Positions 39,758 through 42,700 of a stretch of 63,860 nucleotides of DNA are shown here, piece by piece. The position numbers and the translations under genes are program-made. Position 1 is the first letter of the stretch; every line of letters starts with the position of its first letter. The stretch covers positions 62,141 to 126,000 of the forward strand of contig NC_083237.1 in the NCBI RefSeq assembly GCF_032191835.1, read 5' to 3'. This stretch comes from Heteronotia binoei. Its lineage: Eukaryota. The notes under the pieces are model-generated. The model saw only the letters and a list, made by a program, of their open reading frames with translations, ran no database searches and was not told the DNA's origin.

Positions 39758-42700
39758 ATGGCGGAGGAGAAGAAGGCGGCGAAGCTGAGCCAGACGCAGC
39801 TGCCCGCGGAGTCCATGAAGGCGGCCGCAGAGTCGGTGGGCCTGGGCCACGTGCCCGAGGAGACCTGCCAGATGCTGGCCGACGAAGTCACCTACCGCCT
39901 CAAGGAGGTCGCCCAGGTGAGCCCGAAAGGGGGGGAGGGGTCAGAGGCCCCGCCCCCACCCCTGGTGGCCCCGCCCCGCCCTCTCCCCTGGTGGGCTCCG
40001 AGGGCCCCCTGACCCCCCCTGCTGGCCAACAAAGTCCGCCTCAAGGAGGTCGCCCAGGTGAGCCCGAAAGGGGGCGGGGAGGGGGTCAGAGGCCCCGCCC
40101 CTCGCCCCGCCCCCACCCCTGGTGGCCCCGCCCCGCCCTCTCCCCTGGTGGGCTCCGAGGGGCCCTCTCACCCCCCCCTGCTGGCCGACGAAGTCACCTA
40201 CCGCCTCAAGGAGGTCGCCCAGGTGAGCCCGAAAGGGGGCGGGGAGGGGTCAGAGGCCCCGCCCCCACCCCTGGTGGCCCCGCCCCGCCCTCTCCCCTGG
40301 TGGGCTCCAAGGGGCCCTCTCACCCCCCCTGCTGGCCGACGAAGTCACCTACCGCCTCAAGGAGGTCGCCCAGGTGAGCCCGAAAGGGGGGGAGGGGGTC
40401 AGAGGCCCCGCCCCCTCCCCTCCCCTGGTGGGCTCCGAGGGTCCCCTGACCCCCTCCTGCTGGCCAACAAACTCCGCCTCAAGGAGGTCGCCCAGGTGAG
40501 CCCGAAAGGGGGGGAGGGGGTCAGAGCCCCGCCCCCTCCCCTCCCCTGGTGGGCTCCGAGGGCCCCCTGACCCCCTCCTGCTGGCCAACAAACTCCGCCT
40601 CAAGGAGGTCGCCCAGGTGAGCCCGAAAGGGGGCGGGGAGGGGGTCAGAGGCCCCGCCCCCACCCCTGGTGGCCCCGCCCCGCCCTCTCCCCTGGTGGGC
40701 TCCGAGGGCCCCCTGACCCCCCCTGCTGGCCAACAAAGTCCGCCTCAAGGAGGTCGCCCAGGTGAGCCCGAAAGGGGGCGGGGAGGGGGTCAGAGCCCCG
40801 CCCCCCACCCCTGGTGGCCCCGCCCCGCCCTCTCCCCTGGTGGGCTCCGAGGGGCCCTCTCACCCCCCCTGCTGGCCGACGAAGTCACCTACCGCCTCAA
40901 GGAGGTCGCCCAGGTGAGCCCGAAAGGGGGGGAGGGGGTCAGAGGCCCCGCCCCCTCCCCTCCCCTGGTGGGCTCCGAGGGTCCCCTGACCCCCTCCTGC
41001 TGGCCAACAAACTCCGCCTCAAGGAGGTCGCCCAGGTGAGCCCGAAAGGGGGCGGGGAGGGGGTCAGAGGCCCCGCCCCTCGCCTCGCCCCCTCCCCTCC
41101 CCTGGTGGGCTCCAAGGGCCCCCTGACCCCCTCCTGCTGGCCGAGGAGGCGCCTACCGCCTCAAGGTCGCCCAGGTGAGGCCAAAAAGGCAGGGGAGGGA
41201 GGGGGTCAGTGGCCTCTCCCCGCCCCCTACCCTACCCTACCCTCCCCTGGTGGGCTGCCTCCTCCTCCATTCCCTCCCCTGGTGGGCTCCGAGGGGCCTT
41301 CTTATTCTCTCCTGGCCAAGGAAGTTGCCCAGGTGAGCCCCAAAAGCTGGGCTCTGAGTGGCGCTCTGACCCCCCCCTCCCCGCAGGACGCCTTGAAGTT
41401 CATGCGGATGGGGAAGCGGCGGCAGCTGACCACAGGGGACATGGACTTCGCCCTGAAGCTGAAGAACGTTGAGGTGACTGGGGGTGGGGGGGAGCCCGGG
41501 GGGGGGCCAAGGAGGAGGAGGCAGGGGGCACCCTGCAAACTCTGAACTGGGGGGGGGAGAACTTGGAGGATTCAGTGGGCCTGCCCTGGAGCCCCCCCCC
41601 CCCCCGCAGGGCCAGCAGCATGGTTTCGCCTTGGAGGGCAGGTCGCCTGCAGAAGTCCACCTCTGGCTACCTCTGGCTCTCTCTTGCCTTGCCTTGCCCT
41701 GGGGGTCACCCCGCAGGGTCACCAGGAGTCCTTTGCGCCTTGGGGGCCCTTTGCACGGCCTCTCCGATTGGGCACTGGAGGGAGCCCCAGCACATGTGGT
41801 TTGGGCTGCCCTCAGCAGTGTGGGGATTTAATGATGGCTTTGTGGTGCAGGCAGCCTCTGTGGGGCTGAGGGGGTGGTGGGCTGGCTTCACCCTTTCCCA
41901 CTCTCTTAAGTTGCATGCTGTTTCTGCTGCAGCCGCTGTACGGGTTCCATGCCCAGGAGTTCATCCCCTTCCGTTACGCCAGCGGTGGGGGGCGCGAACT
42001 CTACTTCTACGAAGAGAAAGAGGTGGACTTGAGTGACATCATCAACACTCCCCTCCCCCGTGTTCCTCTGGATGTCTGCCTCAAGGGTAAGATGCCAAGC
42101 AAACGCCGGGGGAGGGGCTGAGCCACGTTTCTCTATCCCACTTCCTGCCAAACGTTCCCCCAACAAGGGAGGAGTAGCAGCAGCAGCTCCACCACCGCCA
42201 CGCAGCAAGGGCCAGAGCTGCTGAAAATGTCATCCACTGCAGCCAGCTGGGGTCTGGGGTGTTTCTGCAGACTCTTTGGCTCCCTCCGTCTCTGGAGACA
42301 AGGAGGTCTGGGAGGAGGAGGAGGAGCAGAGGCGCCATCCCACTCATTCACCATCCCTTCCTTCCTTCCCCAGGCTGGGCAGGCGATTGGAGCTGTCCTG
42401 AGGTTACTGCCCTCCTGTTGTCTGCGCAGCTTCCCTGCTCTTGAGATTTCTGGGGAGCTCTTACGGGAAGATTTCTGGGAAGCTTTCCCTCATGGGGAGG
42501 AGGGGGCACTGCTCCTGGGGATAAGGGATTCCTAAATATCACCTGTGCCTGAGTCTTTCCCCACCCACCCAATTTTTCCTGAGACCTTCAGAGATTGCTT
42601 TATGAGTGAAAGACCGTTTGGGTCAAAAGGCGGCATATAAATGTTTTAAATAACAAAGAAAACCAGGTAGGGATTTGTGTGCTAAATGGAGTTATACAAA

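Follow-up and report, generated by a model that had tools for sequence, protein, structure and literature searches.

A probably neutral minisatellite of copied splice donors in TAF6 intron 1 of the gecko Heteronotia binoei

Human F7 carries the closest described arrangement in which an intron contains many copies of its own 5' splice site. In intron 7 (intervening sequence 7, IVS7) of that gene, a 37-bp variable number tandem repeat (VNTR) places five to nine identical donors after the authentic one (Borensztajn et al. 2006, PMC1557585); splicing takes place at just the most upstream donor, and the others work once those upstream of them have been destroyed (PMC1557585). Human TAF6 provides a second point of reference, since its TAF6-delta isoform uses a donor 30 nt before the main one, in the exon homologous to the one considered here, and the poly-G and poly-C runs of the 99-nt intron 1 that follows modulate the choice of the delta site (Kamtchueng et al. 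2014, PMC4099370). Here we describe an arrangement of the F7 kind in TAF6 of Bynoe's gecko, Heteronotia binoei, within a 63,860-nt stretch of chromosome that we call the window; positions below are window positions, on the forward strand unless stated otherwise. An earlier note on this DNA had claimed that ten extra copies of the 5' splice site of the first coding exon fill the intron behind it, and this proves correct: with the authentic site included, CAG/GTGAG (the slash marks the exon-intron boundary) occurs 11 times. We consider it likely that the array is a splice-donor minisatellite of the F7 intron 7 type that is young, probably neutral and spliced from its most upstream donor.

The locus belongs to assembly GCA_032191835.1 (record CM063339.1), and the sequence fetched for the annotated TAF6 protein matches window positions 37758-51137 base for base. 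It occupies record positions 99,898-113,277 of a 68-Mb chromosome, the end of which is ~100 kb away. TAF6 coding exon 1 (39758..39916) begins with the ATG at 39758, contributes 53 codons encoding the first part of the histone fold, and ends at CAG/GTGAGC; its translation is 100% identical to the N-terminus of annotated H. binoei TAF6 and matches profile positions 2-42 of the Pfam family PF02969 (TAF) with an E value of 1.7e-12. Coding exon 2 (41387..41473), placed by the annotated protein and by tblastn, has 29 codons (DALKFM...KNVE) and matches PF02969 positions 43-66. The exons were searched separately and unjoined, and were joined only in local translations made to locate a stop codon. Because the first exon ends at profile position 42 and the second begins at position 43, the join 39916/41387 restores an unbroken domain, and the sole annotated H. 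binoei TAF6 protein (677 aa) reads ...KEVAQ/DALKFM... across the same junction. As judged from these two sources, this join is required by the annotated protein and by the Pfam histone-fold profile alike.

The intron so defined, TAF6 intron 1, runs from 39917 to 41386 and at 1470 nt is expanded about 13-fold. Its acceptor region (41364..41386) consists of a branch-point-like CTGAC, a C-rich tract and a CAG acceptor, and when a YAG with at least 75% pyrimidines ahead of it is taken as a crude sequence criterion, 41386 is the sole site in the intron to qualify. With a single acceptable acceptor, no pseudo-exon can be defined.

Nearly all of the intron (~97%) is taken up by a tandem array at 39873..41345, which tandem-repeat and repeat-family searches both recovered; its 11 units measure 121-175 bp, and the final one is truncated. 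Tandem Repeats Finder returned overlapping arrays over 39873-41256 with periods of 121/145/151/306/419, 85-91% matches and scores of 617-1141, and the repeat-family search returned an 11-copy family centred on the donor. The units start at the CTGGCC motifs at 39875, 40022, 40181, 40332, 40460, 40581, 40726, 40872, 41000, 41137 and 41312, and each joins the 3'-terminal ~42-44 nt of coding exon 1 to nearly the whole ancestral intron, laid out as exon tail, donor and an intron body that is G-rich first and C-rich after. The units are homologous from 39873, a position within exon 1, onward through the donor at 39916, so that the first unit spans the exon-intron junction. The last exon-side base of CAG/GTGAG falls at 39916 (authentic), 40057, 40222, 40373, 40495, 40616, 40761, 40913, 41035, 41174 and 41332, with spacings of 141, 165, 151, 122, 121, 145, 152, 122, 139 and 158 nt. 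Nine of the ten extra donors match the authentic one across at least 40 bases on the exon side and 12 on the intron side.

Eight of the decoy units, U1-U8 (40022..41136), are well kept, and their donors, from that after 40057 to that after 41035, are the same as the authentic one over a stretch reaching from -24 (the common CCGCCTCAAGGAGGTCGCCCAG) or farther upstream to +18. The full 42-nt exon tail is present at the authentic 39916 and in three decoys (40222, 40373 and 40913). The in-frame variant lacking 6 nt that the earlier note had described is found in five others (40057, 40495, 40616, 40761 and 41035), where the deletion is accompanied by two CpG-to-CpA changes. The two remaining units at the 3' side, U9 and U10 (41137..41386), are diverged, with 56-71% and 37-47% identity, respectively, to the other units; the donor of U9 (GTGAGG, after 41174) lies 212 nt from the acceptor and that of U10 (GTGAGC, after 41332) only 54 nt from it, and U10 carries the true intron end.

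The array also contains the 540-bp higher-order duplication reported in that note. Positions 40321-40500 and 40861-41040 are exactly the same, and by sequence comparison the exact match extends to 203 nt (40310..40512, with its partner 540 bp downstream at 40850..41052); the repeat-family search lists it as a family of 289 nt at 96%. U3 and U7 agree at 100% of positions. An exact repeat of 203 nt is suggestive of recent turnover. Exact repeats of this length and fully identical units are also what assemblers mishandle, and the array might have been over-expanded, collapsed or mis-joined, in which case the real intron would differ from the one described. We judge such an artefact very unlikely: the units grade into one another as a mosaic family whose edge members are diverged, as is typical of real minisatellites, many comparable arrays occur in the same window, the assembly is a chromosome-level RefSeq assembly, and an error in copy number would still leave an array.

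We then compared intron 1 across squamates. The array is absent from intron 1 of all six other species compared, three geckos and three non-geckos. The intron measures 102 nt in Eublepharis macularius, 115 nt in Gekko kuhli, 117 nt in Paroedura picta, 137 nt in Elgaria and 374 nt in Rhineura. The earlier note had raised the question of an array in related geckos; the TAF6 genes of Eublepharis, Gekko kuhli and Paroedura have none, and their loci contain no tandem repeat scoring at least 150. On the introns compared, H. binoei is thus the one squamate of the seven to have the array.

Intron 1 of Lacerta agilis (2157-3661 of its fetched locus) is 1505 nt long with a GC content of 0.50. A separate array there was considered and rejected, as this intron has no tandem repeat except an (AAC)n run; its length is an independent enlargement by another route.

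The ends of the H. binoei units, a CTGAC or CTCAC followed by a C-run, resemble the true intron end without its AG, and a unit is therefore an exon tail joined to almost all of a short ancestral intron. The arithmetic agrees: taking the ~44-nt tail off a unit of 121-175 bp and adding ~10 uncopied bases leaves roughly 90-140 nt, which on these lengths fits the 102-117-nt introns of the other geckos. A dispersed repeat was rejected as the source of the unit, which is confined to the array and was not found elsewhere in the 63.9-kb window.

We therefore favor a history in which a segment of ~150 bp, made of the exon-1 tail and nearly all of a GC-rich ancestral intron of ~110 nt, would have been duplicated repeatedly in tandem, by slippage or unequal exchange, in the H. 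binoei lineage. Such duplication would have copied the 5' splice site and not the AG acceptor, and copying donors without an acceptor would yield a 1470-nt intron with ten orphan donors and a single acceptor. The multi-unit mosaic, the exact 203-nt repeat, the diverged edge units and the CpG decay of the copied tails point to a recent minisatellite that is still turning over free of coding constraint. On this history the array has no selected function and is probably a mutational by-product, most likely a harmless one.

The intron 1 array is one of three minisatellites in H. binoei TAF6, the others lying at 46274-47276 (134 bp x 7.5 copies) and 47852-48500 (104 bp x 6.2 copies). In the last of these the donor and the acceptor are copied together, as micro-exons, whereas the intron 1 array copies donors only. 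The window holds at least five further minisatellites. GC-rich examples near the chromosome end are found at 6847-8279, 14375-14797, 29708-30679 and 30887-33161, with periods, in that order, of 80/160, 80, 36/139/243 and 109 bp and up to 21 copies; the one at 29708-30679 is built from GC-box-like GGGGCGGGG motifs.

The composition of the array raises the alternative that it acts on transcription, in which case a block of U1 sites and GC boxes near the promoter, just past the start site, would raise initiation or elongation or guard against premature termination, while the donors stay unspliced. The array has a GC content of 74% and contains 21 CCGCCC and 5 GGGCGG motifs and 10 C-rich tracts, all within 1.5 kb of the promoter. 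Its CpG observed/expected ratio, however, is 0.37, against 0.75 in the promoter and exon 1 (the orthologous introns of the other geckos have 0.55-0.77), a depletion which suggests that the array lies outside the protected CpG island, and the array is lineage-specific. A transcriptional role thus seems highly improbable.

In the minisatellite reading that we prefer, the spliceosome would pick the most upstream donor, 39916, and the decoys would be silent or would give low-level products that are cleared by nonsense-mediated decay (NMD). We infer this choice, and the departure of the whole array as one 1470-nt intron, from the annotated protein, from the continuity of the Pfam domain, from the place of TAF6 as a core TFIID subunit and from the F7 precedent. 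Because the donor and the first 18 bases of the intron are the same in the decoys, and because predicted accessibility does not set the authentic site apart, position is, on sequence grounds, the only thing that can mark out the authentic donor: no donor but 39916 adjoins the remainder of exon 1, which connects it to the cap or an upstream acceptor.

The predicted RNA accessibility of the 9-nt donor is very low at all 11 sites. The G-run/C-run hairpins of the units have predicted energies of -53 to -60 kcal/mol, and z-scores for the units and for the orthologous introns range from -0.5 to -2.1; in these predictions the folding is probably for the most part an effect of composition. Matches to microRNA-like Rfam families (at 40366-40442, 40906-40982, 41177-41251 and others) scored 27-29 bits against gathering scores of 70-99 and were taken as chance GC hairpins.

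Several observations weigh against this reading. The annotated TAF6 protein may rest on homology instead of transcripts, the length of the array is that given by the assembly, and predicted accessibility does not favor the authentic donor. In constructs with two identical strong donors at least 45 nt apart, splicing falls almost wholly on the intron-proximal one (Hodson et al. 2012, PMC3413131), and by that rule the silence of the decoys is not guaranteed. Further, CCCAG/GTGAG is intact in 10 of 10 decoys, the two most diverged units included; this retention could be a sign of constraint, though U9 has other blocks just as long.

What a decoy would produce can be read directly. Any transcript that continues beyond the authentic donor runs into an in-frame TGA at 40010..40012, codon 85, in agreement with the read-through stop at 40012 given in the earlier note. 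Because this stop lies upstream of the first decoy, all decoy isoforms end at codon 85, whatever the frame of exon 2; use of a decoy adds 141-1416 nt to the exon. The stop is also far upstream of the later junctions, and the decoy product is therefore a candidate for NMD, as the note had supposed.

Regulatory decoys, the idea of the earlier note, are another alternative: transcripts spliced at downstream donors would be destroyed by NMD, or U1 bound at decoys would alter splicing kinetics, and the length of the array would set TAF6 dosage or the alpha/delta ratio. All 10 of the extra donors are as good as the authentic one, each would bring in the codon-85 stop, the proximity rule lets downstream donors win (PMC3413131), and intronic poly-G and poly-C motifs do modulate the delta choice in human TAF6 (PMC4099370). 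A conserved poison cassette, moreover, would carry just such a premature stop; but it would also be conserved in relatives, and the introns of Eublepharis, Gekko, Paroedura and Elgaria are 102-137 nt long and free of repeats, with the array absent from all six of the other squamates. The copied exon tails show CpG decay and a 6-nt deletion, like unconstrained sequence, the further TAF6 arrays favor a mutational process over a gene-specific device, and the F7 pseudo-sites are silent (PMC1557585). Searches of protein collections with exon 1 in its stop-free open reading frame, with the annotated protein and with exon 1 plus read-through returned no H. binoei fragment or alternative isoform, only the annotated protein. 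We therefore regard a regulatory function as unlikely.

The delta site itself bears on the same question. The earlier note had rightly identified this histone-fold exon as the one in which human TAF6-delta arises by alternative 5' splice-site choice (PMC4099370). The decoys are not delta-like: their place is in the intron, downstream of the exon, and not one of them takes out 30 nt in frame or keeps the frame open. The GT homologous to the human delta donor is at 39887..39888, 30 nt upstream of the main donor, and reads GAA/GTCACC in H. binoei against GAA/GTCAGC in 6 of 6 other squamates. A Ser (AGC) to Thr (ACC) codon change within 39887-39895 leaves it without the +5 G, a point against regulatory decoys; in the protein, the histone-fold helix reads DEVTYRL, compared with DEVSYRL/I in the six others. 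The main donor is GTGAGC in H. binoei (39914-39922) and GTGGGG, GTGCGG and GTGGGC in the other three geckos (2154-2162 of their fetched loci), so that the donor that was amplified is nearer to consensus than the presumed ancestral one.

Each decoy also juxtaposes an acceptor-like and a donor sequence, CAG/GTGAG, which fits the recursive splice site consensus YAG/GTRAG. The authentic donor could accordingly be spliced to a decoy CAG, regenerating the same donor, and the array would be ratcheted out unit by unit to give a normal mRNA, the same product as one-step splicing; every unit retains, upstream, a branch-like CTGAC or CTCAC together with a C-run. A recursive site, however, has a strong polypyrimidine tract upstream, and what precedes the decoy CAGs is the purine-containing exon tail with other AGs in it, between the branch-like motif and the CAG. 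None of the decoy CAGs (0) passes the crude acceptor filter of at least 75% pyrimidines, and a 1.5-kb intron has no need of recursion, all of which makes this route very improbable. More broadly, we think it quite unlikely that the decoys are anything but inert, whether through a regulated NMD-coupled fraction tuned by array length or by levels of U1 or serine/arginine-rich (SR) proteins, or through scarless recursive removal of one unit after another.

Head to head with TAF6 lies a gene for a metallo-beta-lactamase-fold protein (Pfam PF00753, MBLAC1-like) at 38765-39616 on the reverse strand. A distance of ~286 bp separates its called start (39472) from the TAF6 ATG, and the two genes probably share a bidirectional promoter. 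An MBLAC1-like neighbor also stands beside TAF6 in Eublepharis and Paroedura.

Taken by itself, the TAF6 array is one more case of a known architecture, and its value lies chiefly in the test that eleven donors afford. Eleven equally good donors, 121-165 nt apart, before one acceptor in an essential gene set up a natural competition between two published rules that conflict, one in which the most upstream donor wins (F7) and one in which the intron-proximal donor wins (the globin and adenovirus constructs). Only the upstream choice yields a working TAF6 protein, and the locus could therefore show the reach of the upstream-first rule over more than 1.4 kb. It could also show how much mis-splicing an essential gene tolerates. 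In addition, the array is a record of how short, GC-rich introns close to chromosome ends lengthen through copies of their own splice sites.

The locus can be set against three described systems. Human TAF6-delta (Kamtchueng et al. 2014, PMC4099370) involves the same exon and a short GC-rich intron with poly-G and poly-C runs, and the copied 42-nt gecko exon tail includes the whole 30-nt alternative segment of the human isoform; in that system, however, the delta donor is inside the exon and 10 residues are removed in frame, whereas the gecko decoys are intronic and lead to the codon-85 stop. The globin C174C and Ad1CC constructs (Hodson et al. 2012, PMC3413131) share with the gecko intron a set of identical strong donors more than 45 nt apart facing one acceptor. 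In the constructs the intron-proximal donor is used almost exclusively, and the same outcome in H. binoei would put a stop codon in every TAF6 mRNA; the upstream donor must therefore supply enough of the essential protein. The likeness is closest to F7 IVS7, where, too, the first unit spans the exon-intron junction and the authentic donor is followed by identical donors and one acceptor. This comparison is drawn from the sequence of one assembly. The TAF6 units differ from those of F7 in being 121-175 bp long, nearly a whole ancestral intron, rather than 37 bp; there are 10 extra donors rather than about 4-8; and the array fills ~97% of the first coding intron in the gene for an essential TFIID subunit. 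The F7 type of splice-donor architecture was thus already known, and the TAF6 array of H. binoei is a further example of it.

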